DNA of 64,000 bases, taken from NCBI GenBank assembly GCA_965112735.1, contig OZ218952.1:5208001-5272000 (forward strand). Reading direction: 5' to 3'. The notes under the pieces are model-generated. The model was not told the origin of the DNA and did not search any database. It saw only the letters and a program-made list of their open reading frames with translations. Numbering within the stretch: position 1 is the stretch's first letter; the number at the start of each line of letters is the position of its first letter. This document shows positions 1 through 35,387 of this stretch, in pieces. The translations under genes were made by a program, and so were the position numbers. Source of the DNA: Phaeosaccion multiseriatum (Eukaryota > Protista > Ochrophyta, other classes).

Positions 1-53
1 TCCCTCTTTCGCACCCATTCACTCACTCACGCAATGGGATCACGCACACACAG

Positions 54-3000: not shown

Positions 3001-4628
3001 CGTACTTCTTCCGCCGCCTTCTCGTCAACCCAAGCTACTACGGACTCGAGGACCGCAGTCCAGAGAGCATCGAGCGCTTCCTCCTGGGCATTGTGGACGA
3101 AGTGGTGACGGACCTCGCCGCCTCGAGCTGCCTACGGGTGGTCGAGGAGGAGGATGGCAGTGGAGGGGGAGGGGAATGGGGCTTTCGGGCTCACTACGAG
3201 GCCCAGCTGGTGCCGACGGGCCTGGGCAAGATCGCCTCTTACTACTACGTGGACCACAAGACGGCGGGCATGGCAGCGGCCTGCTTCGGGGGAGGGGCGG
3301 GGATGCAGTCACAGCAGTTGGTGGTACGGCCGTCGCCGCACGAGCTCATCGTGCCGGAGCAGGGCTCGGCCAAGCAGCTAAAGCTCCCCCCGGCCTCTCG
3401 GATGGTTTCCGAGTTGTGCCGCGTGCTTGCGCAGGCCCACGAGTTCTCGGAGATGCCCGTGCGCTGCAATGAAGACAAGCTCAACGCTGACATGGCAGAG
3501 AGCTTGCCATGGGCCGTGGGTGACTACGAGCTGGACAGCCCGCATGTCAAGGCCTACTTGCTGCTGCAGGCGCACTTCGAGCGGCTGCCCCTGCCCATCA
3601 GTGACTACGGCACGGATACGCGGGGTGTGTTGGACCAGGCCACGCGTGTGCAGAACGCGCTCATCGATTGCGCCGCGGAGTGCGGCAAGCTGCGGTATGC
3701 GCTGGGCCTCATGCGCCTCAGTCAGATGGTGGTGCAGGCGTGCTGGGATGACCAGGACCCGCTCGAGTTGGCCGTGTTTGGGGGGGATGTAGCAGTTGGT
3801 GGTACGCCAGGGGCGTTGACAGAAGAGCACGAGGAGGAGGACAACAACCACAATAACGGGAGCGGTAGCGGCGGGAGGCGCGGTGACGGTCAGCGGAGGA
3901 AGGGTGTGATGAGTGCCCTGAGACGCCGCTACCAAGTGCCGCACCTTCGGGCCCTGCTGAGTCTCGCACGGGGGAGGAGGGAGGAGGTGTTGCGAGGGAG
4001 CGGCTTGCAGGCGAGGGCCGTGGGGAAGGCTATGCGAGCGCTGGCGGGCCTGCCGCTGCTCTCTGTCACCGCAGAGCTACTTCCGCCTGAAGCTCAGGAG
4101 GGTCAGGAGCAGGGCCAGGGTCGGAGGCGGCGAGTACGGGTGGTGCTCTCTCGCTTGGAGGGCACAGGGGAGGCCCAACTGCACTGCCCGCGCTTCCCCA
4201 AGGCCAAGGCGGGGCTGGGCTGCTGGCTCGTGCTCGCCCGGGGGGACTTTGGCAATAGCAGTGGAGGAGGAGGAGGAGGAGGAGGAGGAGGAGGAGGAGG
4301 AGGAGGAGGAGGAGGAGGAGGAGGAGGAGGAGGAGGAGGAGGAGGAGGAGGAGGAGGAGGAGGAGGAGGAGGAGATGAGAGCGCGATGACGGCGATGGCG
4401 GCTGCGCTGAGCTGCTCGAAGGGCGAGGGCCCTGTGCAGCTTCTGGCGGTCAAGAGGCTTGGGGGACTCAAGGCCCTCACGCAGACGCACGAGCTGACCT
4501 TCAGGGAAGTCAGGGAAGAAGAACACGGAGAAGGAGAGGGAGAAGGGCGGGGGGCGAGGGGGGCGCTGTTCGTAGTGACGGACGGAGCCATCGGATTGGA
4601 CATACACACCTCTCTCCCGCTGCGGTAG
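54..4628 (+). CDS. ASCC3: Activating signal cointegrator 1 complex subunit 3 / Slh1-like Ski2-type helicase, 3' part (second helicase cassette + Sec63 domain); 5' end lies outside the window. Exons approx. 54-273, 771-968, 1124-1330, 1664-1810, 2471-2665, 2850-4628
   Basis: The spliced translation gives [140 protein letters not shown] and a Sec63-like [10 protein letters not shown] boundaries keep the frame. Confidence 0.93.
4263..4373 (+). repeat. (GGA)37 trinucleotide repeat, in frame in the last ASCC3 exon (poly-Gly)
   Basis: Pure GGA run counted directly; the ORF continues on both sides. Confidence 0.95.
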
Positions 4629-5477
4629 AGAGAAATCGGTCGTGCTCTCTCCTGCTGCGGTAGGTAGGGCCCTCTCTGTAGGCAGAAAGGTGTGAGAGGG
4701 CTGAGCGACCTTCAACAGTTGGTGATACATCTGGCCACTCTAGCCACGAGTAATGAATTCAAACGACTCATGTTTGTTTTTTTGCTCTGCCCCTTAATTT
4801 TAGAATTAATTGCACCAAAAGCACGGCCCCCCCTTCCTATCGCTCCGCTCCCAAAGTAACAACGCTTTTGAGCGTTCTCCGTCCCCCGCCGCATGTGTTA
4901 ATATGTAACGGCTCGTCTCTCTCTTGTAAGCACATGTATGCTACACTAAAGCCCTCAAACTCAAACTAAAGGCACGCCCCCGCGCCCGCCCCACATATCT
5001 CTCTCCAGCCCCCCTGAAAACTTCAATGCCCACCCCCCCCCCCCCCCTCCTAATGAAGCTAAATTCGTCTTCCAACTACAGAATGCCCCAAAGTGCCCTG
5101 TAAGTCATAAATCCCTCCAGGACAGTCCCCCCTCCCCTGACTAAACTAAACATAAGCTACACCCCCCTTTCCCATCGCTAGCACTACTAAGCTCCCCGAG
5201 CAAACTAAGAAGGTCCCCCAAGAAGGGCCACCAAGCAAGGCCCGGAGCCCCTCTTCTACACAGCCCCATCAGCAAGCAAAACCCTAGCTGCTGTCTTCCG
5301 AATCGAAGAAACCCCCTCAAGCCTTCCTTCCCTCTCAGCTCCTATGCGCATGCCACCTCCCCTCCACAACGCCCTTCACAAGGCGCGTCGATCTCTCTCG
5401 TGCTCCAGGCCCAGCCAGCAGCAGCACCCAGCCACGCCCGTCCGCTACCATCCACTCTACCCCTCCCAGCTAGCTAG

Positions 5478-6845
5478 CTACTCCTCCTCCCAGGCGCTGT
5501 CGAGGCGAGCCACAAAGTCCGTCCCCCAGGGGCCGTCCACGACGTAGTCCTCGTCCTTGGAGGAGGACAGGATGAGGTCCCTCTCCCTGTCGAGGGCATG
5601 CCCAGAGCTGTCGCGTTTCAGGCTCTGAGTCTCTCCCATGACCCCGCTCCAGCGCTCCACGCCGATGTCATTGGGCTTGTGGATGAAACCAACGTCGAGC
5701 ACATGGGCGTAGCAGCGCTCAATCTCCTGGCGGTAGTCCACCTGGAAGGAGTACGTGTCGGTGAAGATGTAAACGCTCGCCCACGACCCGGGCTCCGTGA
5801 AGAGATTCCTCTTGACGCGCTTGTCTGCGATCCACTCTTCACAAAGGGTCCTATCCTCGGCCCTGTGCAGGCGAGACTCCACAGCCAGCAGCGCCGCAAG
5901 GTCGTCATCCACTGCCATCTCCGAGAGACGGCGACCGAGAGTGGAGGCTTTGAGCCTCTCCGCCTCGTTGAGCTCTTCCATCATGTGGATGTCGCGCTTG
6001 ACCTGACAGGGGCCGTACGCGTTAAAGGCCATGACCGTGCCGCCGTTGGCCATGCGGTAGAGCCCCGGCTTGACAATGTGCTTGTCCTCGATGGTGACTC
6101 CCAGAGAGCCGTAGCCCAGGATTTGCTCGGCACGGGGTGTGAGCTCCTCCCCCTGGATGTAGTCTGGGTTGTACTTTTCCACGTCTATGACCTCCACCAG
6201 CGCTCTCGACGACGCAGCCGTGCCCGCCCCTCCAAGGAGAGCGGTCTTGTCATCCCCGTCCAGAGGGGGGGGGAAGGTAAAGGCCAAGGCGGTGGCGTAT
6301 GTCTGTGTGCGTGCGTGCGGTTGTGTGTTTGCAAAGGAAAGGTGATGACGGGTTCATGAGTCAGAGGGGGGCAAGCCAAAGAGTCTGGCTAATGGAAGAG
6401 AGAGAAGAGACCGACAAGTCAAGCGCGAGACCGCCGCCGAGGGAAAAGAATAGCGAGTGAGGAACTATGGTGGTCGGCCAGTACTTGACCGAGAGGGGTG
6501 GCACTGGTATAGGGTGCCATCCACCATCCCCAGGCAAGGCAAGAGGGCACAGGCAGGACTCATACGAAGCACCATGCAAGGAGGCCTCTCCACCCTGTCA
6601 CTGGCTGATTGTCTCGGGAGCTCAAGTGCTCAGATTCGACGACGAGTCCCCCCAATACCGCCGCATCTCTTGACTCACCGGCTGAGCGCCGTTCTCGCAG
6701 GAGGGGAAGACGGACAGCCTCCAGTTCAACTGCAAGTGCCTCTCCGCCAAGGCAGCGTACCAAGCGTTGTGGGCTCCCTTGAAGAGGAAGATTTGCTGCT
6801 TGAAGCCGAAAACCATCGGGTCTCCTTCCATCTGGCCATCCTCGT
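5478..6845 (-). CDS. C-terminal domain exons of the surface protein (6845-6679 and ~6302-5478): GDP-type VWD / Root-cap-like domain
   Basis: The N-terminal motif EGDPMVFGFKQQIFLFKG..AWYAAL...LQLN and C-terminal SGVMGET...DEDYVVDGPWGTDF resemble, from my recall of the family, the GDP(H)-initiated VWD/Root_cap-like domains of algal secreted proteins. The last exon is an uninterrupted ~270-codon ORF. Confidence 0.65.
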
Positions 6846-9800
6846 CTGAAAGCAAGCACAACCACAGTCGTCCAAATATGTAAGAATGAGTGAGAGGGAG
6901 AGATATCAACCTTAGCTAGTCAGTAGAGTATTACACATCACCAGCCAGGGCAATACAGTCAGTCCTGTGATGTTTCAAAGGATATCTTCCTCACCACAGG
7001 TAGTGACAGCAGCCTGGTCCGCGTTGGCCACAGAAGGGCAGCTGGAAGGAGCAGAGGAAGCAAAGAGGCCAGAGAGAAGGGAGGTGAAGCAGTGTGAGCT
7101 CCTCCACGGAAGCAGGAAGACACCAGGCAGGGCACTTGGCCACACACAGGAGGGAGCCGGCAAAGTCACAAACCCGCAGGCACGGGAAAACTTGACAAGC
7201 AGGGGGCGACGATGCCATGACAGAGAGACGCTGGGGGGGGCACATTCACGCAAACTCGCTCCTTACTTGTCACAAGCGTCTCCGACTCCGTCTTCATCGG
7301 CATCCTCTTGCTTGGGGTTGTCTACGTCAGGGCAGCTGCGAGGACCAAGGAGCAACAAGCAAGGAGAGAGATTTCAAAGGGAGCGAGACGCTGGGGGGGT
7401 AGCTGGCTACACGCACGCAATCAGAACGCACACACATTCCCACTTGGCCACACACAGGAGGGAGCCGGCCAAGTCACAAACCCGCACGCACGGGAAAACT
7501 TGACGAGCAGGGGGCGACGATGCCATGACAGAGAGACGCTGGGGGGTGCACATTCACGCAAGCTCTCTCCTTACTTGTCACAAGCGTCTCCAACTCCGTC
7601 TTCATCGGCATCCTCTTGGTTGGGGTTGCCTACGTCAGGGCAGCTGCGAGGACCAAGGAGCAACAAGGAGAGGGAGACAATGTAGTCGCTCAGTGTGTCG
7701 ACCCTCTACAGGGAGACGCTGGGGGGGGACACGCACACAATCAGCACGCCCACACATACGCACACTATCTTCATTCCCACTCCAGCCAGTCGGTCCACAG
7801 TTTAGAACACTTACTTGTCGAGATGGTCTGCAGTGCCGTCCTCGTCGATGTCTGCCAGTACGAGACGCCGGGGCAGGAGGAGACGGGGAGCGACCCAGCA
7901 GCAAAAGACGAGAGAAAAGTGGGTCAGACTATGGTAGAGCACCTCAAGTACAAGAATTCGAGGTGCTCGCTCACTGTGGGATGAAAAGCAGCAGATAATA
8001 AAGCGGGACAGCAGACAAGGAGGGGACAGCAAATAGACGGCCCATGGAAGGAGACTCTTCCATGGGTTGCTCCAAGGCCCCCTTGCTCTACTCAGCACTT
8101 TCTCTGCAGGTACAGAACATGAACGGATCGCCCTCACCACATTCAATAACGCGCGCAGGGCTTCGCGCGTGCCGAAGAGTCGCACGAGTCGAGCAGACAG
8201 GGGGGAGGGGGGTTGTGGAGCGAAACAAACCAGACAGAGAAAAAAAGTGAGCTTCCTTGCTTGAACGGGCGAGTGAGGGAGTACGGTACAGCGTGCAATG
8301 GCACACACACACACATACACTTGTATGGGCGAGCGCAGCAAGGGAGGAAATGACCATCAAGGGATGACCGTGCCGGGCATTGAGGAGCGGATACACGCGC
8401 ACACTGCATCGAGCTTTGCTTCGGGCTTGATGACTTACCACCCGACGCCAGTGCAGCACGCTGTTCCTGTCGTTGTCTGAACCTGAGAATACGCCATTCG
8501 ACAAAAGTACAACAGTGAGGACGGGAGCTCGATGCAGGCATCACCTTCCTGCAACAAACAGCACAGTCCCAAGTCAAATGACACCCGTTACTGCACTCCT
8601 TACATCTCACCCCCTCCTCGCGCACGCACCTCAAGGGGAGGATCCCCCTTGTCGTCGTCACAGGAGCCGGCCACAACACACGTGGCCCGGGAGTGCCCGA
8701 ACAGCCAAACAACCTGCAGAGGTGACGGATGGGTGCAGCGAGGCCAGAAAAGGCAAGAGGAGGGAGGGTCGCGGGGGTGGGAAATACACCATTTAGACTC
8801 CTCATTCTAGTGTCCCTCCGGTCGTGCCTTCGATCGCCTCCCGCATGCCCTCTTTCTTTCCATGTCAGCCAGCCACATCTTGGCAAGCAAATGCAGCTCA
8901 TCTCAGCCAGCATCCGTAGCAGGTGCTTTGCGCGTGAGGATCAAATTATGCACAAAGGTTGCGGCAAGCTGCGCTGAGCGGCGAGTGAGCTTCAAAGCTT
9001 GACTTGCTTACGCCCCAACCCCCCCCCCCTTGTTTCATTGAAAAGCAACGACTTACCAAGCAAGCCAATGAAGCGCTGCACGTCAGCTCCGCCGTGCAGT
9101 CCCCCTCCTCTATTCCTCCCCCCGAGAGGCAAACATCCGCGGCCTGGTGGTGGCAACGAAGTCGAGACAAAGCCACCGTGCATTGTATGAACACAGATGC
9201 GGAGAGGCAATCAAAGCACGCAGGCAGGCAATGAGCGGGGGGGAGGATTCATGAGGCAGACTCTGTCGCTCGGAGGCCGGACCAGCAGGCGTGCAAAAAG
9301 TCCAAGCATAGATGCGTTGGCTTGCGCAGACAACAGCCAAAACAAGTCTGTTCATGGGAACAAGGGGCAGCACGCGTGTTGAGATGCGGTGCAGCTCGGC
9401 CGGTTGTGGCCTTGCCATGAGGAAAGGAAGGAAGTCACAAATTCACAGCAAAGAAGCCTCGGGGAGAACGGGAGGAAGGGCACCGGCAGTGACGAGTCTC
9501 AGGCGGCAACAGATGGAAAAGGAGGCCAGCAGGAGGGTGCGGCGGTGCTGGCTGCTGTACATGTACAGTCAGCCAAGAGAAGAGAGCGACACTTACATAG
9601 CACGAAAAAGCAGCTTCGCAAGTAGCCTTTGAGTCGTCGAGGAAGGATGTTTGCTGTGATGTACGGGGTGGTGCGATGCGTGCAGAGAGCGGTAGGGGGG
9701 TTAGTTCAAGGCCAATCAGCCCACACCGGAAAGTAAGAGGAGTGAGGAAAAACATGAAGAACGCAAGCAACTAGTGGTGTGGAGGAGGAGGGAGCGGGGC

Positions 9801-12800
9801 GCCCACAAAACAAGTCGAGCAACTACAGCATCTCCATCTACTCGTCTCCCCCCAAACCCCTCCCCCTGAGACAAGAAGCAAAGAAGCCTCAGGGAGAAAG
9901 GGAGGAAGGGCACCAGGAGTTTAAATCTCAGGCGGTGGGAGAGATGGAAAAGGAGGCCAGCAGGAGGGTGCGGCGGTGCTGCTCTACATGTACAGTCAGC
10001 CAAGAGAAGAGAGCGACACTTACTTGGCAAGCATACCCCCCACTGCAGGTAGCACTTGAGGTGCTGAGAAAGGATGCTTCCTGCGATGTACGGGGTGGTG
10101 CGATGCGTGCAGAGGGCGGTAGGGGGAGTGAGTTCAAGCAAGGCCAATCAGCCCACACCGGAAAGTAAGAGGAGTGAGGAAAAAAATGAAGAACGCAAGC
10201 AACTAGTGGTGGAGGAGGAGGGAGCGGGGCGCCCACACACAAGTCGAGTAACTACAGCACCTCCATCTACTCGTCTCCCCCCAAACCCCTCCCCCTGAGA
10301 CAACAAGAAGCAAAGAAGGAAAGGGAGGAAGGGAGGAAGGGCACCGGCAGTGACGAGTCTCAGGCGGCACCATATGGAAAAGGAGGCCAGCAGGAGGGTT
10401 CGGCGGTGCTGCTGTACATATAAAGTCAGCAAGAAGAAGAGAGCGACACTTACTTGGCAAGCCCTCTCCCCACTGCAGGTAGCCTTTGAGTCGTCGAGGA
10501 AGGATGCGGACTGCGATGTACGGGGTGGTGCGATGCGTGTGAGGGCGGTAGGGGTTAGTTCAAGGCCAATCAGCCCACACCGGAAAGTAAGAGGAGTGAG
10601 GAAAAAAATGAAGAACGCAAGCAACTAGTGGTGTGGAGGAGGAGGGAGCGGGGCGCCCACACACAAGTCGAGCAACTACAGCATCTCCATCTACTCGTCT
10701 CCCCCCAAACCCCTCCCCCTGAGACAAGAAGCAAAGAAGCCTCCGGGAGAATGGGAGGAAGGGCACCGGCAGTGACGAGTCTCAGGCAGTGGGAGAGATG
10801 GATAACAACACGCCAGCAGCTAGGAGGATGCCGCGGTTGGTGGAGGCGTACATCTAGCTATAGCCCGAGGAAGATAAAGAGACTTACCGCACACGAATAA
10901 GACTCACTACCCGTACAGGTAGCTTTTGAGGTGCCGAGGAAGGATGCAAACTGCGATGTGCAGGGGAAGAGCACATGGGGTGGTGCGATGCATATGGGCA
11001 GGGGGGGAGTGAGTTCAAGCAAGGCCAATCAGCCCACACCGGAAAGTAAGGGAACTGAGGAAGGCTTTAGCTAGGCTAGCCGACGACAAATGAAGAATGC
11101 AAGCAACTAGTTTTGAGGGAGGGAACGGGACAGCCCATACACGTCGAGCAACTACAAGCAACATCTCGGGGGGGGGCGGGCAGAGTTGTTAGGGCTAATC
11201 CATTTCTCGTCTCCCCATCATCCCCTCGAGATCCAAGAACTGGCCAGCCAGCAGTAGTGCTCTTTGGATGGAGAGCGAGCTGGAAAGGGCTTCACGTCAC
11301 CGACTCACCTGACACGCCCTTTCGCCGCTGCACTCCACTTCGCAGTCCTGCAAGGCGAGCAAAGAGCAGCAAGCAACAGGATGGTCATGGCATGAGGTGA
11401 CACGTTGGAGGGATTCCAATGACGCCATCCACGACGTTTGATGGGCATTAGTCTGGTCAAGTCAAAGTACCCAAAAGAAGTCCTGGACTTTCGACAAACG
11501 CAGGCCAGCGACAGGCAGACGAAGCGAGGGGCGGTGCAGACATCAATATTGGCGATGACCATACACAAGTCTGTGTTGACAAGAGCAGAAGAGAGCAGTG
11601 AAAAGGGTGAAGTCTGATGCTTAGACTTACGTTAAATGTCTTAGACTGGAAGAGCCGCGAAGGACGAGAAGCGTTGTCCACGTCCGCAGCACCCACGGAC
11701 GGGGGGGGGGGTGGGAGGTTGCCCAGTCCCGGCGGTACAAGGATGGGGGCGAAGGGGGGCGAGGGTCCCACCAGCCCAGCAAGCAGGAGTGAGACGCGCC
11801 ATGAAGTCAAGGGACAGCAGCCAGTGTTAGGAAGGGGACGAGGGAGACCAGAGAGCGGAGCCGGAGAAGCCCGTGCATGGCCAAGGGCAGGGCAAGGAAG
11901 GGGGTGGGAGGGTAGCTAGGGAAATCGAGCAGAGGAGGAACGCACAGATGAAGCACAGAGGAGTGAGTCTCTCGCCCGCTATGCCACTACCCCACACCCT
12001 TCACTCACGCACAAGCAAGCCGCTCCTCACAGACAGGTTTCAATTCCACCACTCTTCACTGCCTGCCTGAAGAAGCGCAGAGCACGAAGGTCAAGACCAG
12101 CAGCTGCCTGGGGAGGAGCAGCAAGGCAGGGGCACACGGGCAGCCCCTCCTACGTAGCGCAGACATGCTGCGCTCGGACGGACCTGACATGCTCCATTGG
12201 AAGCGTCGTCGCAAATGACGGGGGAGGCGCAGTCGGAGCAAGTATCGCCGTCTATGGTTCCTCTTGCATCCCCACATATGTCAGCAAAGGCTGAGGCACA
12301 TGACGCCCAGTGGCAGTGAGAACGGTAGAAAGGTAAGAGGGGAGCGAGCTTAGATGCCAGCAAACAAGGTGCGTGGGCGAGCAGGGGCAAAACCGCAATA
12401 CTAGACGCTGGAGGCCACGCAACCTAAGTCAGTAGAGCATTACACATCACCAGCCAGGGCAATACATCCCTTGCTCACCACAGTTAATAGGGACAATATC
12501 CTGGTCCGCGTTGGCCACAAAAGGGCAGCTGGAAGGAGCAGAGGAAGCAAAGAGGCCAGAGAGAAGGGAGGTGTAGTCAGCGCGAGCTCCTCCACGGAAG
12601 CAGGAAGACACCAGGCAGGGCACTTGGCCACACACAGGAGGGAGCCGGCCAAGTCACAAACCCGCACGCACGGGAAAACTTGACAGGCAGGGGGCGACGA
12701 TGCCATGACAGAGAGACGCTGGGGGGGGGGCACATTCACGCAAACTCGCTCCTTACTTGTCACAAGCGTCTCCAACTCCGTCTCCATCGGCATCCTCTTG

Positions 12801-15800
12801 GTTGGGGTTGCCTACGTCAGGGCAGCTGCGAGGACCAAGGAGCAACAAGGAGAGGGGGACAATGTGGTCGCTCAGTGTGTCGACCCTCTACAGGGAGACG
12901 CTGGGGGGGTACACGCACACAATCAGCACGCACACACACACGCACGCCATCTTCATTCCCACTCCAACCAGTCGGTCCACAGTTTAGAACACTCACTTGT
13001 CGAGATGGTCTGTAATGCCGTCCCCGTCGATGTCTGCCAGTACGAGACGCCGTGGCAGGAGGAGACGGGGAGCGACCCAGCAGCAAAAGACGAGAGAAAA
13101 GTGGGTCAGACTACGGTAGAGCAAGGAAAAGAATTCGAGGTGCTCGGCTCGCTCACTGTGGGGATGAAAAGCAGCAGATAATAAAGCGGGACAGCAGACA
13201 AGGAGGGGACAGCAAATAGACGGGCCCATGGAAGCGAGACTCTTCCATGGGTTGCTCCAAGGCCCCCTTGCTCTATTCAGCACTTTCTCTGCAGGAACAT
13301 GAACGGATCGTCCTCACCGCAATCGATACCGTTCGGAGGGCTTCGCTCGTGCCGAAGAGTCGCACGAGTTGAGCAGACAGGGGGGGGGGGGGGGTTGTGG
13401 AGCGAAACAAACCAGGCAGAGAGAATAAACGTGAGCTTCCTTGCTTGAAGGGGCGAGCGAGGGAGTACGGTACAGCGCGCAATGGCACACACACACACAT
13501 ATAAAATCACTTGTATGGGCGCAGCAAGGGAGGAAATGACCATCAAGGGATGACCGTGCCGAGCACGCGCACACTGCATCGAGCTTTGCTTCGGGCTTGA
13601 TGACTTACCACCAGACTCCAGTGCAGCACGCTGATCCTCCTGTCGTTGTCCGAACCTGAGAATGCGCAATTCGACAACAGTACAACAGTGAGGACAGGAG
13701 CTCGATGCAGGCATCACATTCCCGCAACAAACGGCACAGTCCCCAAGTAAAATGACACCCGTTACTGGACTCTTTACATCTCACTCCCTCCTCGCGCACG
13801 CACCGTAATGGGAGAGGACCCGGGGTAGTTGCAGGAGTTGGCCGCATTACACGTGGCCCGGGAGTGCCCGAACAGCGAAGCAGCCTGCAGAGGTGACGGA
13901 TGGGTGCAGCGAGGCCAGAAAAGGCAAGAGGAGGGAGGGTCGCGGGGGTGGGAAATACACCAGTTAGACTCCTTATTCTAGTGTCCCTCCGGTCGTGCCT
14001 TCGATCGCCTCCCGCATGCCCTCTTTCTTTCCATGTCAGCCAGCCACATGTTGGCAAGCAAATGCAGCTCATCTCAGCCAGCATCCGTAGCAGGTGCTTT
14101 GCGCGTGAGGATCAAACTACGCACAAAGGTTGCGGTAAGCTGCGCTGAGCGGCGAGTGAGCTTCACAGGTTGACTTGCTTACGCCCCACCCCCCCCCCCT
14201 TGTTTCATTCACATAAAAAGCAACGACTTACCAAGCAAGCCAATGAACCGCTGCACGTCAGCTCCGCCTTGCAGCCCATCTCCTCTACCCCTGGGGATCC
14301 CTGCGAGAGGCAAACACGCACGAACTGGTGGTGGTACCGAAGTCGAGACAAAGCCGCCAGTATTGAATGAACACAGATGAGAGGCAAGCAAAGCACGCAG
14401 GCAGGCAATGAGCGGGGGGGAGGATTCATGAGGCAGACTATGTCGCTCGGAGGCCGGACCAGCAGGCGTGCAAAAAGTCCAAGCAGAGATGCGTTGGCTT
14501 GCGCAGACAACAGCCAAAACAAGTCTGTTCATGGAAACAAGGGGCAGCACGCGTGTTGAGATGCGGTGCAGCTCGGCCGGTTGTGGGCTTGCCATGAGGA
14601 AAGGAAGGAAGTCGCAAATTCAAAGCAAGAAGCCTCTGGGAGAAGGGGGGGAAAGGCACCAGCAGTGACGAGTCTCAGGCGGCGACAGATGGAAAAGGAG
14701 GCCAGCAGGAGGGTGCGGCGGTGCTGGCTGCTGTACATGTACAGTCAGCCAAGAGAAGAGAGCGACACTTACAATGCACGAAAGAGCAGCTTCGCAAGTA
14801 GCACTTGATTCGCCGAGGAAGGATGCAGACTGCGATGTACGGGGTGGTGCGATGCGTGCAGAGGGCGGTAGGGGGGTTAGTTCAAGGCCAATCAGCCCAC
14901 ACCGGAAAGAAAGGGAACGGAGGACAAAAATGAAGAACGTAAGCAACTGTGGAGGAGGAGGGAGCGGGGCGCCCACACACAAGTCGAGCAACTACAGCAT
15001 CTCCGTCTACTCGTCTCCCCCCAAATCCCTCCCCCTGAGACAAGAAGCAAAGAAGCCTCTGGGAGAAGGGGGGGAAGGGCACCAGCAGAGACAAGTCTCA
15101 GGCGGTGGGAGAGATGGAAAAGGAGGCCAGCAGGAGGGTTCGGCGGTGCTGCTGTACATATAAAGTCAGCAAGAAGAAGATAGCGACACTTACTTGGCAA
15201 GCCCTCTCCCCACTGCAGGCAGCCTTTGAGCCGTCGAGGAAGGATGCAGACTGCGATGTACGGGGTGGTGCGATGCATGCAGAGGGCGGTAGGGGGGATT
15301 GAGTTCAAGGCCAATCAGCCCACACCGGAAAGGAAGAGAAATGAGGAATGAGGTTAGCCGACAACAAGTGAAGAATGCAAGCAACTAGTGGTGAAGGAGG
15401 GAACGGGACAGCCCATACACGAATCGAGCAAGTACAAGTAGCATCTCGGGGGGGGCGGGCAGAGTTGTTAGGGCTAATCCATTTCTCGTCTCCCCATCAT
15501 CCCCTCGAGATCCAAGAACTGGCCAGCCAGCTGTTGTGCCCTTTGGATGGAGAGCGAGCTGGAAAGGGCTTCACGTCACCGACTCACCTGACACGCCCTT
15601 TCGCCGCTGCACGTCACTTCGCAGTTCTGCAAGGCGAGCAAAGAGCAGCAAGCAATTCGGATGGTCATGGCATGAGGTGACACGTTGGAGGGGTTCCAAT
15701 GACGCCATCCACGACGTTATATGGGCATCAGTCTGGTCAAGTCAAAGTACCCAAAAGGACTTTCGACAAACGCAGGCCAGCGACAGGCAGACGAAGCGAG

Positions 15801-18800
15801 GGGCGGTGCAGACATCAATATTGGCGATGACCATACACAAGTCTGTGTTGACAAGAGCAGAAGAGAGCAGTGAAAAGGGTGAAGTCTGATGCTTAGACTT
15901 ACGTTAAATGTCTTAGACTGGAAGAGCCGCGAAGGACGAGAAGCGTTGTCCACGTCCGCAGCACCCACGGACGGGGGGGGGGGTGGGAGGTTGCCCAGTC
16001 CCGGCGGTACAAGGATGGGGGCGAAGGGGGGCGAGGGTCCCACCAGCCCAGCAAGCAGGAGTGAGACGCGCCATGAAGTCAAGGGACAGCAGCCAGTGTT
16101 AGGAAGGGGACGAGGGAGACCAGAGAGCGGAGCCGGAGATGCCCGTGCATGGCCAAGGGCAGGGCAAGGAAGGGGGTGGGAGGGTAGCTAGGGAAATCGA
16201 GCAGAGGAGGAACGCACAGATGAAGCACAGAGGAGTGAGTCTCTCGCCCGCTATGCCACTACCCCACACCCTTCACTCACGCACAAGCAAGCCGCTCCTC
16301 ACAGACAGGTTTCAATTCCACCGCTCTTCACTGCCTGCCTGAAGAAGCGCAGAGCACGAAGGTCAAGACCAGCAGCTGCCTGGGGAGGAGCAGCAAGGCA
16401 GGGGCACACGGGCAGCCCCTCCTACGTAGCGCAGACATGCTGCGCTCGGACGGACCTGACATGCTCCATTGGAAGCGTCGTCGCAAATGACGGGGGAGGC
16501 GCAGTCGGAGCAAGTATCGCCGTCTATGGTTCCTCTTGCATCCCCACATATGTCAGCAAAGGCTGAGGCACATGACGCCCAGTGGCAGTGAGAACGGTAG
16601 AAAGGTAAGAGGGGAGCGAGCTTAGATGCCAGCAAACAAGGTGCGTGGGCGAGCAGGGGCAAAACCGCAATACTAGACGCTGGAGGCCACGCAACCTAAG
16701 TCAGTAGAGCATTACACATCACCAGCCAGGGCAATACATCCCTTGCTCACCACAGTTAATAGGGACAATATCCTGGTCCGCGTTGGCCACAAAAGGGCAG
16801 CTGGAAGGAGCAGAGGAAGCAAAGAGGCCAGAGAGAAGGGAGGTGTAGTCAGCGCGAGCTCCTCCACGGAAGCAGGAAGACACCAGGCAGGGCACTTGGC
16901 CACACACAGGAGGGAGCCGGCCAAGTCACAAACCCGCACGCACGGGAAAACTTGACAGGCAGGGGGCGACGATGCCATGACAGAGAGACGCTGGGGGGGG
17001 GGCACATTCACGCAAACTCGCTCCTTACTTGTCACAAGCGTCTCCAACTCCGTCTCCATCGGCATCCTCTTGGTTGGGGTTGCCTACGTCAGGGCAGCTG
17101 CGAGGACCAAGGAGCAACAAGGAGAGGGGGACAATGTAGTCAGTGTGTCGACCCTCTACAGGGAGACGCTGGGGGGGTACACGCACACAATCAGCACGCA
17201 CACACACACGCACGCCATCTTCATTCCCACTCCAACCAGCCTGTCCACAGTTTAGAACACTCACTTGTCGAGATGGTCTGTAATGCCGTCCCCGTCGGTG
17301 TCTGCCAGTACGAGACGCCGTGGCAGGAGGAGATGGGGAGCGACCAGCAGCATAAAACGAGAGAAACGCGGGTCAGTCTACGGTAGAGCACTTCCAGTAA
17401 AAGAATTTGAGAGGAGGAGGAAGAGGAGGAACGCGAGCGCACAAGACGAGGGGCAACCCGCTGCAGATGTAGAGTCTAAGTTTGGACGTGCACAATGGAG
17501 TGCTTCTCCCCGAGCCCTGCCCTTTCTCACCACACGCGTCTCCTACTCCGTCACTATTGCTGTCGTCTTGGTTGGAGTTGGCTGTGTCCGGGCAGCTGCG
17601 AGGAGTCAGCACGACAGGGGGGTGGAAGTAATGCAGTCAGTGTGGACCCTCTTCGACACGCGGGGGCGTTGCGCACGCACACACACATTTGTTGTAGTCG
17701 CACTTGCATGTCAAGTGGAGCAGAGAGGAGGGTGTTGACTAGGCCAACACCAAAGACTAGCTAGACAGAGAGGCGCTGGGGGGGGGCACACGCAGCACAC
17801 ACTGCGTACAGCCATGGAAAGGAGGGCTACTACCGCAGGCCGCAGAGAAATGCGCTCTGGGGGGGCGCACCCAGGCCACGCTGCACACCCACACACACAC
17901 ACAAGCACGACGCGATCCACTCCCGTCAAGTCGGTCCGAAATGTAGATAATGAATTAAGCCACTCACTTGTCGCGATTGTTCGGAATGCCGTCCACGTCG
18001 GTGTCTGCATCAGGAGGGCCGCCACCGCCGCACGAGACGCACGCCATGGCAGGAGGGGGTGGGGAGCGGCCCAGCAGGGCATTAACAAGGCAAGCGCATG
18101 AGAGAAACGATTGTCAGACTGTGGAGGGCAATGGGTGGGGCAGCCACGACACAAGAATCCGAAGAGCTCACTGGCTGTGCGGCCATGAAAAGCAAGCAGC
18201 AAGTATCGAGAGCGACGAGATGAAGGTGCACAAGTCATCCTGAGCTCCGTCCCTTCCCTCACCATCTCACTCGTGCTTACCTTCACACACTCGAGTCGGT
18301 GTTGTACCGTCGTTGTTCGTGGTTGGGCTAAAAATGGTATGCACACGGGCGAGGTTCAAGCAAGAAAGGAAAGGAGAGTTCACCAAACAGCAACACAACA
18401 GCATCAATGCACAAAGACAGGAGCAAAGGGAGGGGGGGGGGGGTGAGCGCGAGGGTGTGGGATTGGCGCTCCTTGCCTTCTTGGGCAACCCAGCACGGGC
18501 AGGAGAGTGAATGCACCCCTCAAAGGCACTCTGTCTGCGACTACCCACTTACCAAAATCCTTCCCCCCTGGCCAGGCAGCATGAAGCGCCATTCCCTAGA
18601 GTCTATTGGCCAGCCGCAGCCGAGAGTGATACAAGGAAACGTGGGAGACAGGCGCGGATGGATGGTCAGTCATCGTATCACACAGCACGTCATCTGGGGC
18701 GTAGCTATAAGCGTGTCTCTTGTACTTCTCCTTGCATGGACTGGCCCACTTCCCTTTACACACACACACCTCGAGACTACTGCAGGCCGCTGGAGCGGTG

Positions 18801-21800
18801 CAGATAGCGGCCGAATTGTCATCAAAGTCGGTAGACTGTGTGGGGGTTGACGACGTGGGTCAGCAAGAGGCCAGGGGCACAGAGGGGAGGTCAGGAGAGG
18901 AGCAAGGCTTGGGGCATGGGCCGTTCAGCGGCGGTGCGACAGAAGTAAGCAACAGAAATAGCCAGTCAGAAGAGCGAACGTGGGCTGAGACAAATAAAGC
19001 ACGAAACAGGAGTAATGTTCAGCGCAAGTTGCGATCGAATTGCCTTCAAAGCAAGTCCGCAGACTGGTTCGAGGGGAGCAGGGTGTGTGCTCAAGAGAAA
19101 AGAGGGCGGGTGCGCGAGGCCAGCAGAGGGGCACAGGGGGGAGGTCTGGGGTGTGTGCCGCCAGTGGTACGACACAAGTAAGATACGCAATTGGCCAAGC
19201 AGGCCGCAAGAGCGGACTGAGAACTCACTTCACAGGAATTCTCCCATGAGCAGGTGGCGGTCGAAGTGTCTTGGAAAATGGCATCCTGTGTGGAGCAGCC
19301 AGGCGGGGTGTGTGTTTATGAGAAAAGACGGCAGGAGACCAGCACACACACAGAGCGAGGGGCACAGGGGGGAGGTCAGCAGAGGAGGGAGGCCTCGGGT
19401 GTGTGCCGCCAGTGGTACGACACAAGTAAGATACACAGTCGGCCAAGCAGGCCGCGAGAGCGAGCTGAGCTGAGAACTCACTTCACAGGAGCTCTCCCCT
19501 GAGCAGGTGGCGGTCGAAGTGTCTTGGAAAATGGCATCCTGTGTGGAGCAGGCGGGGTGTGTGTTTATGAGAAAAGACGGCAGGAGACCAGCACACACAC
19601 AGAGCGAGGGGCACAGGGGGGAGGTCAGCAGAGGAGGGAGGCCTCGGGTGTGTGCCGCCAGTGGTACGACACAAGTAAGATACACAATCGGCCAAGCAGG
19701 CCGCGAGAGCGAGCTGAGCTGAGAACTCACTTCACAGGAGCTCTCCCCTGAGCAGGTGGCGGTCGAAGTGTCTTGGAAAATGGCATCCTGTGTGGAGCAA
19801 GCAGGGTGTGTGTTGAAAATAAAAAGAGGGCAGAAGACCGGCAGAGCGAGGGGCACAGGTGCACAATATCATCCGCCCGTCCACTTTACATTCGTCAGGG
19901 TCCAGCAGGTGCACGCAAAGACAGAGGGAGAGAGCCGAGGGTACGAGGCTTGCTCGCAAGGAGGCGAGAAACGCACAGGAGCGAGGAGCGGAAGTGACAA
20001 ACAGAAAGGAGGCCAAGAACACACACAGCGAGGAGACCAACCGAACATCGGCAAGCAGAGCAAGCACGAGAGAAGGTGGAAAGGCACCGGAACGCCCCGT
20101 CCCCGTTCATGCGTGTGTAACGTCAACCCCCTCACACCAAAAGCGACTCACCCCGCAGCTACCGCTTTGCGTGCAGGAAACAGCGCAGTTCTTCAGGATG
20201 GGCAGCATTGTGAGGTGGGGACATGCGAGAGAGAGGGGTGGAGTGAGCAGAGTCGATACGATGCATCAATATGAAAGCAGCCGCAGGGTGAGGGTAAGAA
20301 GGGGGGCCCTGGCGGACAGCGACAGCGCAGGCTTGGACTGGCACAAAGATCAGGCAGGCGCTAAAGCTGTCGCATAGAAGCAGCCGCCCCGCACTACTAC
20401 AATGAAAGGCGAATCTCAAACGTCCATCAACAAGCGGCGGAGGCCACACTCAGAACCACTTCTCAGCCCCTGCCTGGCGTGGGAGTCCAAACGGCGGATG
20501 GGATGAGCGATAGCAAACACTCACCACAAAAGTGGTGCCCTGTGACGTCGAAGAAGCAATGCCGCCATGAGAAGAAAATGCGAAGAGCGTGGCAGTGAAT
20601 AGCAGCAGCGTCAGCCGAAGGAGGGTGGCGAGGGAGCCAACCACAGGCCGCCGTGAGGACGAGCAGTAGACAGGGGGCACAGGGGGCACGTTCGCGGTTC
20701 GGCCCAGCCAATCGTTGCGGATGTTTTGGTGAGTCGTGACCAGTGGTATAGGGAAGGCGAGCGGTTTGTGGCAGAGAAGAAGGGACGTAGCACAGCGCAA
20801 CGTGGTTAAGTGGAGCGGCGGAACAAAAGTCAGTCATATGCCCACTTCCTCGAAAGAGAGATTGGTACGGTGAAGGCGTTGACAACGCCTAGCCCCTCTT
20901 CAAGGAGGGGGACAGCAACTCTACACGCAGATAGATGCAGGGGGTACAGGAAGAGTGGCAGGCAGCAGGCTGTTGGTGTAGAGAGAGAGGGAGTGACTGT
21001 AGTGGCAAAGAGCGCGGGAAGTGCATGGGGGCGAGTCAAGGACTTGGCGAGAAGCGCTGGTGAAAGGCGCAACCGTACCCACCTGGCAGACCTGTCCCCC
21101 ACACACAAGTTGATTGAGAGGGTTCACAGAAGTGCAGGTGCACGTGTCGGAGGACGTGACGTAGTCTCCACCGCCCGCCTCGCAGATCGGCTTCGCGGAA
21201 ACGTCTGTAAGTCATGGTAGGGACAGGGGAAGGAGATGGGCAAAAGGCGAGGAGCGGCAAAGGAGACAAGAAGCACAAAGCAAGGGGAGTGAGTAGCAAG
21301 CTGCGGGCAAGCGGGGATTGATCGTCCAATGGGCATGCCGATTACAGAGCAGGAGGGGCATAGGGCTGAGGTTGAGTCTGAGGCACACGCTGTCCAGACG
21401 AAGGGAAGGTGGGGGGGGCGAGGGGCATCAGCAGTACGAGGGGTGCGTCTGGCTGGGGGCGGGTGGCATCCACGTCAGGGGCTGTGGGCACATCACTTCT
21501 TGAGGCAAGAGTAAGTTTGTACGCACAGCCTCGACATTTACGGTGGGGGTATGATCGAAGAGCAGCTCAACCATGGCAGCTGACAAGTTTTGATCGCCCT
21601 CTACTCCCCCCCCCCCCACCCCGCGGGGGCATGACGCAGCCACGTGTACTTACCGAAAGTGTATGTGTCTTGTTTGGACGAGGGGAAAGTGCTGGCGTAG
21701 AGCTCAGTAGTACCGTCCGCGTCGAGGATCTTGAAGCTCGCGCCGTTGATGCGGTCCTTGCAGCAAGTGCTGAGACGGTTTGTGACCTCGCAGCCAGTAC

Positions 21801-23156
21801 GTGACGACTTGGTCACGTCCGCCAGAAAGGTAGAGAGTGAGCCGGGGAGCGGTATCCCCTGCGGCGGAGTGACAGAAGTTGTTCTTGTCGTCCTTGGTGC
21901 CGTCGTCGCAGTTTTGAGCTAAAAACGACCCAGAGGTAGAACTCAAGGTGATACCCTCCAGGTCAATCTTGTCATTGCTGCCATCGTAACATTCGACTTC
22001 TGCCAGATTAAGGACAGGCACACCCCCGTCCGCCGGAGGAGGCACTTCGATGACGACTTGCCTGTCAGAGCGAGGGCACAGAAGCAGCGAGGGGGGGGGG
22101 GTATCGACAGGCGAAACGGGGGTTTCGCAACGTGCATTTAGTGGTGACTTCATCTGCGCTTCGAGTAGGCAGTAGCGGGAGTGGCTCAATGAAATGACGA
22201 GAAAGGGGAGGTCCATAGCGAGCTCTGGCTGTTCACTCCGTTTCGCAGAAGGGGTACTTACTTGCCAACCTCTACGATAGGCACAGGAGAGCAGCCAGGA
22301 GGGTGCACAGTGGTCCAAAGGGCCGCCAGCACCCATGCGCCGAGCCGTGAAGCACACATGCGGGCGAACAGGGCAGGCAGCCGTGAGCAGCCCAACGGGG
22401 GGGGGAGGGCGTGAGCAGCACGCCAGAGTAATTTTGCTTGTATGGCTTCGACATTTACGGCGGGGAAATGATCGAAGAGCAGCTCAACCATGGCAGCTGA
22501 CAAGTATTGATCGCCCTCTACTCCCCCCCCCCCCCCCCGTGGGAGCATGACGCAGCCACGTGTACTCACCGAAAGTGTATGAGTCCTCTGCGGGTGAGGG
22601 GAAAGTGCTGGCGTAGAGCTCAGTAGTGCCGTCCGCGTCGAGGATCTTGAAGCTCGCGCCGTTGATGCGCGCTAGGTGAATATCATTGTCATTCCGGTTG
22701 GTGACCTCGCAGTACGCAACGACTTGGTCGGCACCGCCAGAAAGGCTCAGGGTGAGGGTAGCGCCGCCTGCTTCGGCCTGGGAGTGACAAAAGGTTTCTG
22801 CATTGCCGTCGACGCACAGAGCGGCAGGAAACTCCTTCTCGCTGCCACTGGAGTAGTAAACGGAGCTGAGGAACGCCGAGGTCGGAATCTTCGCATCAGC
22901 GCTGCCGTCGTAGCAGGCCACTTCTGCCAGATTAAGGATGCCGTCACGGTCACCGCTCATCGGAGGGAGTTGAATAACAACGCTCCTGTCAGGGCCAGGG
23001 CAAGCAGCATCGAGGGGGGGGGGGAGGGGGAGGGCACAGAAGGTTGGTCATGCCTGTTCTGTGGCTGGAGGACTTCAGCAAGAACAAGAATAAGAATTAC
23101 TCACTTTCCCCGGCCTGAGCAGCCAAGCACAGCCAGCCGAGACGAAGGGAAGGCAT
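5478..23156 (-). CDS. Large multi-micro-exon gene for a modular Cys-rich secreted/surface protein (F-type-lectin-like x2, Cys micro-exon repeats, TSP type-3 repeats, C-terminal VWD/Root-cap-like domain). The 5' part carries frameshifts, so it is probably partly pseudogenised; the 5' boundary is uncertain
   Basis: More than 25 short minus-strand segments bounded by (c/t)ag and gt(a/g)ag have compatible phases. Example: CPSVANADQAAVTTC (phase 1) joins DEDGQMEGDP. Three homologous super-modules lie at approx. 21204-16750, 16560-12478 and 12290-6995. Confidence 0.7.
7267..7643 (-). CDS. Two 69-nt phase-2 exons (7267-7335, 7575-7643), each one thrombospondin type-3 Ca-binding repeat; further copies at 12757-12825, 17029-17097 and 17531-17595
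   Basis: They translate to CPDVDNPKQEDADEDGVGDACD and CPDVGNPNQEDADEDGVGDACD, matching the TSP3 consensus CPxxxNxxQxDxDxDGxGDAC, with canonical splice sites. Confidence 0.88.
9430..11110 (-). repeat. Four tandem ~430-bp intron+micro-exon units (exons 9597-9653, 10024-10080, 10454-10510, 10888-10950)
   Basis: Near-identical intron sequence (cgatgtacggggtggtgcgatgc, ggccaatcagcccacaccggaaagtaag) recurs about every 430 bp. The exons encode QTSFLDDSKATCEAAFSCY, EASFLSTSSATCSGGYACQ, SASFLDDSKATCSGERACQ and FASFLGTSKATCTGSESYSCA. Confidence 0.85.
19080..19860 (-). repeat. Three tandem ~250-bp intron+57-nt micro-exon units (exons 19229-19285, 19482-19538, 19731-19787)
   Basis: Direct repeats; the exons encode DAIFQDTSTATCSGESSCE (x2) and DAIFQDTSTATCSWENSCE, with cag/gtgagt boundaries. 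Confidence 0.87.
21654..22061 (-). pseudogene. Second F-type-lectin-like exon, frameshifted by a 4-nt insertion at 21791-21797
   Basis: Paralog of 22570-22985. It reads TAC TGGC TGC GAG GTC versus TAC TGC GAG GTC in the paralog; removing 4 nt restores YCEVTNRLSTCCKDRINGA. Confidence 0.7.
22570..22985 (-). CDS. Exon encoding an F-type lectin (fucolectin/F5-8C fold)-like domain, intact copy
   Basis: The sequence LNLAEVACYD...AALCVDGNAETFCHS...EVTNRND...RINGA resembles the FTP signature (Ca-binding xDG, His, RxD..R, LxLxEV), with the LAEV strand at the N-terminus. Confidence 0.6.
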
Positions 23157-24784
23157 GGTCCGAGAAGAGCGCCACCGGCCGCAGCCACCACCGAGCCAGT
23201 ACGTAACCAGTACGTAGCCAGTACGTTAGTATACATGCGGCGCATGAGAGCATGGGGGAAAGAAGTGAGCAGCAGCACGCTAGTTTGGGGGCAGAGTAAT
23301 TTGTTTGTACCGCTTCGACATGGCTGGTTCTGAGACACGCCAGCCCAGAAGCAGGAAGCAGGCCGGCTGGCGCCGACCAGAACCAGGAACCAACCTTGGC
23401 GCCCATCATTGCCTTATTACATGGCCCCCAGAACCTCCTGGAACCTGCCTGATACACCCCCCCGGCCGTAGCTAAAGCTGCCTAGCTAGCCTCCCTCCCG
23501 GCCGGCCGTCGGATCACGGCCGCACCAGCCACGCCCCACGCAGCAGCCAGCCCCTTTGGAACTTACAGGAAAGGCCTGGTGCTGGTTCCTGGCCCGGTGG
23601 ACGCACATGCGAGAGCTGCGGGTGGTGTTGCTGCGAGGAGGCACCACAGCCAGCACCAGACTGAGGGCCCACCTCCCGAAGCCGTTCTGCTTCATGGGGG
23701 GGAGCATGGCTGCAGTCTCGCAGACTCTCCAAATGCCCGCTGCGACGAAAGGCAGGCAAGCAAGAAACAGGGGCCAAGCATAACAAGCCGTCATTAAGGC
23801 TCCGGCCGCAACTTGATAAATCTGCCACATCTCTCGACTGAATCAAGCAGAAGCCTGCAGAGCAGTGGATTCGCACAGCAGACAGGAGGTTGCGGCGAGA
23901 CGAAGCAGCCATAAAATGTGCGAGTGCCGAGGAGGAGAGGCAGGAGGCAGTCCAATCTCAATCGGAAAAGAAAACATTCCGTCGATTCGGATACACTCGT
24001 AGACCAAGGTTATTGGGCAGTCCTTCTCTCCCCCTTTTCTTCCTCACCACACGCCCGCCCGTGCCTCTCCCGGTTTTCCCGCCGCTCCTGCCCCTCAAAC
24101 GATTTACCTGTACGTGATTTCTCTCCCCACCTCGCTCTCGCTCCTCATCTGAAAAAGAGGATTCCCTTAACCCGCGCCAGATAGCGCCTAAATAGCGTGG
24201 CTGAGGCTTATATAAACGCTATCTGGGTCCAGATAAGGGACCCCCGGGCCCTATTTAACCCTTGGACAAGGCTTATATAACGAACGCACCCCCTATTTAG
24301 ATAAATCCTTATATAGCGCTACACGCGCCAGATAAGGTGTTGGCTGCCCCCCTTTATATAAATAATTATATGGCACTATACGCGCCAGATAAGCTGCTAT
24401 ATTGTGTGCCCAAGGGGGTCTACATGTACGAATATAATATTCACATCTAGACCACCCCCTTGTTACGGTTATGATTTACAGTATCGTTTACATGTGTGTG
24501 GTAGGGAAGTTGCCGCCGCCGACAGAGCCCGGCTGGGGAAGGCTGGGGGAGGGCAGACGCATATGGGGGAGGAAAGCAGGCAGGCAGGGAGAGTAGGGAA
24601 CAGGGAAAGACTGACTGCGAAAGATGCCGGAGGGGGAGGGGGGGGGGGGGATGATGTGTGAGGTCTTCTCCTACTACCCCCATCCCTGCGTCCGCGGGCC
24701 TGGAGCTGCAGTCCGTGCTTGCCCATGTAACCATGTATGCTGCGGTCTAGCGCTTGGCCCTGCTCTGCCTTGCGCACGCTTCAG

Positions 24785-35104: not shown

Positions 35105-35159
<55 letters not shown>

Positions 35160-35279
35160 AGGATGAGGGTGAGGGTGAGGGTGTGATGGGTGAGTGGTGA
35201 GGGTGAGGGTGAGGATGAGGGTGAGGGTGTGATGGGTGAGTGGTGAGGGAAAAGATCGGGATCAGGGTCAGAGTCAGGA

Positions 35280-35316
<37 letters not shown>

Positions 35317-35349
35317 AAGGGTGAGGGTGGGGGTCGGTGAGGGTGAAGA

Positions 35350-35387
<38 letters not shown>

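Follow-up and report, generated by a model that had tools for sequence, protein, structure and literature searches.

The 64,000 nucleotides analyzed here (positions 5,208,001 to 5,272,000 of contig OZ218952.1 of Phaeosaccion multiseriatum; hereafter the window) are eukaryotic DNA of about 59% G+C and contain a 17-kb gene on the minus strand, whose donors and acceptors are flagged on the plus strand by 'cttac' and 'ctg'. Within this gene lies an array of very short exons, each of which encodes one repeat with a pair of cysteines (the Cys-pair exons). The array is found where an earlier note, made from the sequence alone, had placed it, and it reads on the minus strand. These exons have diverged more than the introns that separate them, and the excess lies in non-synonymous change. 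We think it reasonably probable that the gene belongs to a multi-copy family and encodes a secreted protein with a lectin-like domain and thrombospondin type-3 (TSP3) repeats, in which each coil is carried by one symmetric exon, coils are gained and lost through the introns, and exposed residues are diversified.

Organization of the gene

The gene model (Table 1) was curated by hand on strong donors and acceptors, with reading frames set through paralogous exons and intron phases, because a dynamic-programming gene finder trained on neighboring genes gave a poor model with the Cys exons in wrong frames. Most exons are short (32/43 have 69 nt or fewer) and the median length of the 42 introns is 284 nt; the gene escapes annotation based on open reading frames. 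The spliced frame is open for 1,132 codons, from just past a frameshift in the second exon to the stop at 5478, and the phases are consistent in a repeated order: a (1>2), b (2>2), c (2>1), d (1>0), then f, n copies of g, h and i (all 0>0), j (0>2) and k (2>1). In the predicted product a putative signal peptide (E1) is followed by a domain exon (E2), a Cys-rich linker, a first Cys-pair array, TSP3 repeats, a Cys-rich d exon with the second Cys-pair array, TSP3, another d exon with the third Cys-pair array, TSP3 and, at the C-terminus, a domain of some 330 residues encoded by 6679-6845 and 5478-6302.

There are 17 Cys-pair exons, one more than the approximate count of the earlier note, and they are the symmetric phase-0 micro-exons with one repeat each that it had described: they measure 39-93 nt, always a multiple of 3 nt, all are phase 0-0 and all have AG/GT flanks. 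Eight are of 57 nt, besides 63-, 66- and 39-nt variants, and the unit introns have 88-97% identity. The repeat has 19 residues of the pattern xASFLxxSxATCxGxxxC; exons 10024-10080 and 10454-10510, for example, translate in frame to EASFLSTSSATCSGGYACQ and SASFLDDSKATCSGERACQ. C12 and C18 never vary among the 17 repeat exons, the residues A2, F4, S8, A10, T11 and S/A17 are conserved, and positions 1, 7, 9, 16 and 19 have an entropy of at least 2.5 bits. This alternation of conserved and variable positions fits beta-strands with conserved residues inward and variable residues outward, and we infer that the array would form a disulfide-stapled beta-solenoid, which the alternation supports without proving it.

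Self-BLAST of 6000-25000 displays three layers of repetition, namely two super-modules of about 5.2 kb (~7441-12620 and 12621-17411, with 90-92% identity), in each a tandem of ~425-nt units (four at 9447-11156 and two at 14623-15447), and units of about 249 nt at 18870-19859. The domain exon is also duplicated (21505-22101 and 22422-23024, 74% identical). Array A consists of four units (A1 to A4) and array B of two (B1 and B2), as had been proposed; the five units claimed for the third, 5′ array resolve into three that are near-identical, one that is dead (C4) and one that is diverged (C5). By global alignment, module B is without two ~420-nt units of module A, and both breakpoints are intronic. 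Site partitions identify B1 as a hybrid that joins the upstream intron of the A1 position to an A2-type exon. Gain and loss of intron+exon units with intronic breakpoints is supported by these observations, and the earlier view of intron+exon amplification is upheld.

Divergence of Cys-pair exons and introns

The cleanest test compares positional orthologues between the super-modules (exons f, A2/B1, A4/B2, h and i). Here the Cys-pair exons differ at 51/321 sites (15.9%) and the introns, leaving out a near-identical tract described below, at 113/2316 sites (4.9%; Fisher P=2e-11), so exons are indeed more variable than introns, as the earlier note had stated. The proportion of synonymous sites that differ (pS, Nei-Gojobori) is 4.5/74.8 (6.0%), the same as in the introns (P=0.42), and the non-synonymous proportion (pN) is 46.5/243.2 (19.1%). 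The ratio of non-synonymous to synonymous divergence (dN/dS), Jukes-Cantor corrected and taken from pairwise counts and not from a codon model, comes to 3.5 (P=0.002-0.006); against intron divergence the corresponding ratio, dN/d(intron), is 4.4 (P=4e-13). Indels that separate the exons of the two super-modules measure 6, 3 and 3 nt. The divergence profile between the modules peaks at exons A4/B2, h and i; a fourth peak, at ~8319-8377, is intronic. A non-synonymous excess together with synonymous change equal to that of introns is what diversifying selection predicts, and diversifying selection on the Cys-pair exons is thus supported.

The TSP3 exons of the same gene are a clean internal control and behave normally. 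In four comparisons of exon with intron (3.8% vs 4.4%, 8.6% vs 7.3%, 4.3% vs 5.4% and 21.5% vs 29.5%) they are without excess divergence over their introns.

The six array A/B units, aligned together with 230 nt of sequence to either side, give the same picture. P-distances range from 0.19 to 0.40 in exons and from 0.05 to 0.29 in introns; exon divergence exceeds intron divergence in 14/15 unit pairs (P<0.05 in 12/15). The clearest pair is 9597-9653 and 14773-14829, where 11/57 exon sites and 22/452 intron sites differ and no intronic window is so diverged. For 10024-10080 and 10454-10510, the pair singled out in the earlier note, its 14 differences in 57 exon sites stand (vs 41/449 intron sites, P=0.0013), with about 1.5 of them synonymous where it had counted one. 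Its statement that the adjacent introns differ by a few small indels was too strong: 5/93 sites differ in the upstream 120 nt, in addition to 8 gap columns, and 16/103 (15.5%) in the downstream 120 nt, and among intronic windows of 57 columns 8% reach the divergence of the exon.

The near-identical tract of about 1.3 kb (11533-12853 in module A, 15805-17125 in module B) has identical exons b, c and d, and its introns differ at 5/1263 sites. There are 0 differences in successive 60-column windows, and the adjoining sequence is 4.9% diverged, which indicates recent intragenic gene conversion. Since conversion is active in this way, and invariant blocks of 27 and 15 nt occur in the unit introns (below), one might suppose that the exons are old and the introns only look young, with conversion or unequal exchange homogenizing the introns while selection for different coils, either balancing or toward functional differentiation, shields old exon variants. 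Old exons would, however, show diverged synonymous sites. The observed pS of 0.060 equals the intron value of 0.049, few as the synonymous sites are, and only non-synonymous change is high; we therefore regard this explanation as unlikely.

Another possibility is that whole stretches of exon are replaced as cassettes, by short exon-limited conversion from family members or other units, which would leave clustered, mosaic differences. Exons 9597-9653 and 10454-10510 do have an identical 20-nt stretch, an 11-nt stretch is common to 14773-14829 and 10024-10080, and 19/55 informative exon site pairs are incompatible. To judge by DNA depth there are many paralogues with ≥90% similarity, and ASSET in snake toxins is a precedent (PMC2711939). 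Incompatibility is similar in the introns (27%), though, no sequence that could have donated the variants of exons h and i occurs in the window, and imported tracts should bring synonymous differences, of which few are found. Replacement by cassettes is accordingly an improbable explanation of the exon differences.

Predicted domains, transcription and close copies

The domain architecture, which the earlier note did not recognize, can now be read in part: an F5/8-type-C/F-lectin-like domain and, by their motif, canonical TSP3 repeats are recognizable, and the Cys-pair repeat and the C-terminal domain have no match in the searches given below. PF22633 and PF00754 are F5/8 type C (NedA-like galactose-binding) families. 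In an exhaustive phmmer search the intact lectin-like exon at 22568-22984, upstream of the gene, matched 75 proteins, the best non-repetitive matches having E=1.6e-18 and 7.9e-15; PF22633/PF00754 occurs in 10/10 of the matches scanned with Pfam (the two best at E≤1e-43), and direct Pfam scores of the lectin-like exon fall below threshold (E=0.08). Homology to these family members places E2 in the F5/8-type-C/F-lectin-like group, with sugar binding as its predicted function. The TSP3 motif DNCPxxxNxxQxDxDxDGxGDxCD can be read directly in about 10 copies in three runs of the spliced product. Pfam TSP_3 (PF02412) scores E=0.0026 and 17.8 bits (cutoff 25) on the 22-residue exon bB alone, all Pfam scans having been made on single exons and not on spliced runs.

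The terminal exon T2 (274 residues) has no Pfam match at E≤1, the TSP C-terminal lectin-like domain included, and no homologue in the protein collection or the metagenome loci, with ESM Atlas scores of ≤0.86 only; AF2 run on the single sequence gave a model of no use (pLDDT 32). Among PDB sequences the profile built on the 19-residue repeat had no match, and ROC-COR, NB-ARC, LRR and TPR domains are absent from the spliced product as read directly and by single-exon Pfam. An exact-protein look-up of an open reading frame from the upstream copy found nothing on record. There is no transmembrane segment or hydrophobic tail in the predicted product, which therefore looks secreted rather than membrane-anchored.

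RNA-like evidence comes from run X5 (contigs totaling 34 Mb, obtained from a different sample; the run carries no RNA label), whose contigs, with those of DNA runs X1-X3, were compared at ≥90% likeness with 16400-22399 of the window. Among the joints listed, run X5 has eight with CT..AC ends, each matching a modeled intron to the base (16562>16751, 16800>17029, 17301>17531, 17595>17968, 18004>18281, 18327>18553, 18602>18770 and 18835>19229), none of which is present in the DNA runs. Splicing at the modeled sites is thus seen in RNA for eight introns of the 5′ part of the gene, which is probably transcribed. Joint 18835>19229 leaves out the dead exon C4 and is the only skip among the joints listed. 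An RNA contig covers 21802-21924 of E2 with 0 mismatches, and an RNA loose end at 21680 matches the 3′ end of the upstream lectin-like exon copy. The RNA depth of 7.4 in the 200-nt bin of the tentative micro-exon E4 fits about 15 covered bases. Of the words sampled from 9400-15400, a stretch that is about 15% exon, X5 contained 0.15.

In the DNA runs the summed contig depth is 3-25x that of single perfect contigs, introns included, and in the 5′ array one joint goes back (19844>18873) and one segment is replaced (19237>19528); both findings point to close paralogues or structural alleles. We also note that 1,375 contigs of X1-X3 pile on the 6 kb of 16400-22399, and that many positions are unlike the assembly in all DNA contigs compared (e.g., 17623 T>A and 21361 T>C). 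The sample contains many close copies or haplotypes of this region. The intact second F-lectin-like exon (22422-23024) lies 0.5 kb upstream of E2 in the same splice-site context; its donor phase would also fit E3, so that it could replace E2.

In the six array A/B introns a block of 27 nt, CTTTCCGGTGTGGGCTGATTGGCCTTG on the gene strand, is invariant and lies about 75-100 nt upstream of each micro-exon (plus-strand starts of its core, GGCCAATCAGCCC: 9710, 10142, 10564, 11023, 14886 and 15309). Within the window it occurs only in these introns, and it has no match in the metagenome contigs. As 61% of intron columns are invariant in the six-unit alignment, the chance of a 27-nt invariant run is about 6e-4, and the block may serve as a signal by which the micro-exons are defined or spliced. 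Closer to the acceptor there is another invariant block, of 15 nt. No Rfam match at E≤1 was found in 6000-23000 that would indicate intronic RNA genes. An introner or mobile-intron origin of the unit introns was considered and rejected, since the 64-kb window holds no other copies of them and TTGGTGATACAG is absent from the gene; paralogous copies exist elsewhere, to judge by DNA depth. With one mismatch allowed, the 12-mer TTGGTGATACAG occurs 8 times in the window (4719, 37226, 40098, 49675, 50113, 50140, 51199 and 56061) vs 0.14 expected, at no point within this gene.

Elsewhere in the window, positions 1-4700 of the plus strand carry, to judge by eye from ORF translations, a multi-exon helicase gene of the Brr2/ASCC3 kind, with a Sec63-like region and a long poly-Gly run. 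The strongly purine/pyrimidine-skewed, microsatellite-like tract at 34753-35955 (GC skew 0.64, with SP/HP/TL dipeptide runs) is probably non-coding simple sequence.

Table 1. Exons, repeat modules and associated features of the gene, in window coordinates
Feature	Position	Strand	Basis and remarks
Whole gene model	5478..22359	-	43 exons, 42 GT-AG introns, curated, consistent phases
E1, putative start and signal-peptide exon (MCASRLGAWVLAALWTTV...)	22262..22359	-	Read from the sequence as a likely assignment; RNA depth zero in 22200-22399
E2, F5/8-type-C/F-lectin-like domain exon (predicted), frameshifted	21654..22061	-	phmmer via intact upstream copy; RNA contig over 21802-21924
4-nt insertion CTGG relative to upstream paralogous exon, frame-shifting	21794..21797	-	Alignment and translations
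E3, Cys-rich linker exon, phase 1 to 0	21083..21204	-	Model; RNA contig piece 21082-21204 with spliced flanks
E4, tentative 15-nt micro-exon (GTTFV)	20525..20539	-	Strong AG/GTGAGT sites
f0, truncated 39-nt Cys-pair exon (NCAVSCTQSGSCG)	20152..20190	-	Splice sites and model
C1, 57-nt Cys-pair micro-exon	19731..19787	-	Splice sites and model
C2, 57-nt Cys-pair micro-exon, identical to C1	19482..19538	-	Splice sites and model
C3, 57-nt Cys-pair micro-exon, 3 nt different from C1, all non-synonymous	19229..19285	-	RNA joint 18835>19229 ends there
C4, dead copy of 61 nt, frame-breaking, weak GTGCTT donor	19003..19063	-	Skipped by RNA joint 18835>19229
C5, diverged 66-nt Cys-pair exon (STDFDDNSAAICTAPAACSSLE)	18770..18835	-	Model; RNA joints 18602>18770, 18835>19229
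j0, CC-motif linker exon, phase 0 to 2	18553..18602	-	Model; RNA joints 18327>18553, 18602>18770
k0, linker exon, phase 2 to 1	18281..18327	-	Model; RNA joints 18004>18281, 18327>18553
a0, TSP3 half-repeat exon (DTDVDGIPNNRD)	17968..18004	-	Model; RNA joints 17595>17968, 18004>18281
b0, TSP3 exon (CPDTANSNQDDSNSDGVGDAC)	17531..17595	-	Model; RNA joints 17301>17531, 17595>17968
Super-module B (range as aligned, reaching aA 12997-13033, first exon of super-module A)	12997..17301	-	Self-BLAST, global alignment with module A, model; RNA joints 16562>16751, 16800>17029, 17301>17531
Module B TSP3 exons	aB 17265-17301, bB 17029-17097, cB 16751-16800	-	
Module B, dB (Cys-rich) to B2	dB 16456-16562, fB 15588-15626, B1 15194-15250, B2 14773-14829	-	
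Module B, hB to kB	hB 14232-14324, iB 13804-13884, jB 13609-13655, kB 13318-13340	-	
Super-module A (range as aligned, reaching a3 7815-7851, first exon of terminal TSP3 run)	7815..13033	-	Self-BLAST, global alignment, model
Module A, aA to fA	aA 12997-13033, bA 12757-12825, cA 12479-12528, dA 12184-12290, fA 11309-11347	-	
Module A, A1 to A4	A1 10888-10950, A2 10454-10510, A3 10024-10080, A4 9597-9653	-	
Module A, hA to kA	hA 9057-9143, iA 8630-8713, jA 8439-8482, kA 8138-8160	-	
Array A, four intron+exon units of ~425 nt	9597..10950	-	Self-BLAST and unit alignment
Array B, two units	14773..15250	-	Two ~420-nt gaps relative to module A; site partitions
Near-identical tract of module A	11533..12853	-	Partner 15805-17125 in module B; exons b, c, d and introns
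Terminal TSP3 run	6995..7851	-	a3 7815-7851, b3 7575-7643, b3' 7267-7335, c3 6995-7041
T1, first exon of C-terminal domain	6679..6845	-	Model
T2, terminal exon, 274 codons and stop, orphan C-terminal domain	5478..6302	-	Phase-0 acceptor CACACAG
Invariant 27-nt intronic block	9710..15321	-	Longest invariant run in six-unit alignment
Upstream paralogous intact F-lectin-like exon	22568..22984	-	Acceptor and donor context same as E2

Interpretation and comparison with known systems

The account we favor, a secreted lectin/TSP3 protein whose symmetric coil exons turn over through their introns and whose exposed residues diversify, could work as follows. Because the introns are homologous between units, unequal recombination or slippage would add or remove whole repeats with the frame kept, and this would explain why the arrays have 4, 2 and 3+1+1 units and how the hybrid B1 arose. 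Gene conversion would keep parts of the two 5-kb super-modules identical. Positive diversifying selection would replace residues at repeat positions 1, 7, 9, 16 and 19, while the alternating positions A2, F4, S8, A10, T11, C12, S/A17 and C18 stay fixed. Such a pattern suggests a role in ligand recognition, i.e., the binding of a glycan, partner or pathogen.

Several observations weigh against this account. About 75 synonymous sites enter the dN/dS estimate, which compares paralogous repeats of one gene, not orthologues; the units have variable states in common in mosaic fashion, and short gene conversion may therefore contribute. The RNA comparison covers 16400-22399, on the 5′ side of arrays A and B, E1 is without RNA cover, and close paralogues are expressed, including a variant copy that diverges at 22016 (an RNA loose end), so that the splice support, from contigs accepted at ≥90% likeness, may come from a near-identical paralogue. 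Finally, relative to the upstream paralogous exon, the CTGG insertion at ~21794-21797 shifts the frame of E2. The RNA contig stops 5 nt short of this insertion, and the loose ends at 21795 belong to copies that lack it. The locus may thus be a very recent pseudogene, a null allele or misassembled at the insertion; the 41 exons downstream of E2 are intact, and the lesion is therefore very recent, allelic or an assembly error. That the gene is instead a decaying pseudogene, killed by the frameshift and with exon differences that are neutral noise, is very unlikely in spite of this 4-nt insertion and the dead repeat exon, because neutrality predicts equal exon and intron divergence and a dN/dS near 1, not a 3-4-fold excess in one exon class, and because 1,132 stop-free codons extend over the 41 exons past the frameshift, exon indels are in-frame and the RNA is spliced.

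A wider version of the favored account can be offered only tentatively, and we regard it as improbable. In it the gene would belong to a large, lineage-specific repertoire, in which gain and loss of coil exons, exon-limited conversion and combinatorial inclusion of exons provide a germline-encoded, possibly splice-expanded means of recognizing non-self or partners. If it were true, a microbial eukaryote would have a recognition system built on a not-yet-described repeat fold. A tractable candidate recognition repertoire would be available in this organism if the favored account held for the whole family.

It is rare for exons to change several times as fast as their own introns; such exons are known from toxins, immune or recognition receptors and brown-algal ROCO genes, and they mark arms races or recognition. 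The present case concerns a modular, putatively secreted protein that would combine a lectin-like domain with animal-type thrombospondin calcium repeats. In spite of the likenesses given below, the gene is outside the micro-exon gene and toxin families.

Conotoxin genes have conserved introns around hypervariable coding segments (PMC3862624), and snake toxin genes undergo rapid change of short exon segments, or ASSET (PMC2711939). As in both of these, coding segments of the present gene outpace the adjacent introns through amino-acid replacement; the toxins are small, single-domain products of venom glands, however, whereas the hypervariable parts here are internal repeats of a modular protein. 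The micro-exon genes (MEGs) of schistosomes encode small secreted proteins from non-repeat exons of 3-81 bp and are alternatively spliced (10.1101/2023.06.21.545858; PMC4350168). They resemble our gene in their mostly symmetric micro-exons (the 69-nt-or-shorter majority here), secreted products and accelerated evolution, but its micro-exons code for the structural repeats of a protein that is about 1,250 residues long, and the dead-exon skip is the only one among the joints listed.

With thrombospondin and COMP (PF02412) the predicted protein has in common Asp-rich, putatively calcium-binding loops bracketed by Cys; it differs in that no TSP C-terminal, EGF or TSP1 domain was detected and in that its repeats are divided between exons 37-69 nt long. 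For the Cys-pair repeat a lead is provided by the Tenebrio antifreeze protein, a disulfide-stapled beta-solenoid of 12-residue coils. The likeness lies in the short regular repeat, the TC-x5-C spacing and the alternating conserved small residues, but the coils here would have 19 residues and the repeat has no sequence match in PDB. A further lead, and a possible relative, is the Cys-rich ice-binding protein of Chloromonas (PMC4838330).

The closest analogue appears to be the exon shuffling of Ectocarpus ROCO-LRR genes, in which every LRR has its own 72-nt exon, some exons are inactivated and positive selection acts (PMC3341825; Zambounis et al. 2012) and which belong, with the NB-ARC-TPR genes, to the candidate receptors of that alga (PMC11378527; Teng et al. 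2024). In these genes, as in the one described here, each repeat occupies one phase-0 exon whose length is fixed (72 nt in Ectocarpus, 57 nt in our gene), exon+intron units are amplified and shuffled, dead repeat exons lie in introns, the repeat exons bear signs of positive selection, and the genes form a multigene family with pseudogenes. The differences are that our repeat is a 19-residue Cys-pair unit and not an LRR or TPR, that the protein is likely extracellular, that the partners of the repeat are lectin-like and TSP3 modules and not a ROC-COR GTPase or NB-ARC, and that we saw none of the reverse-strand intronic repeats of the Ectocarpus genes. If the account holds for the whole family, the Phaeosaccion gene would represent a second, independent case of the one-repeat-per-exon route to receptor diversity.

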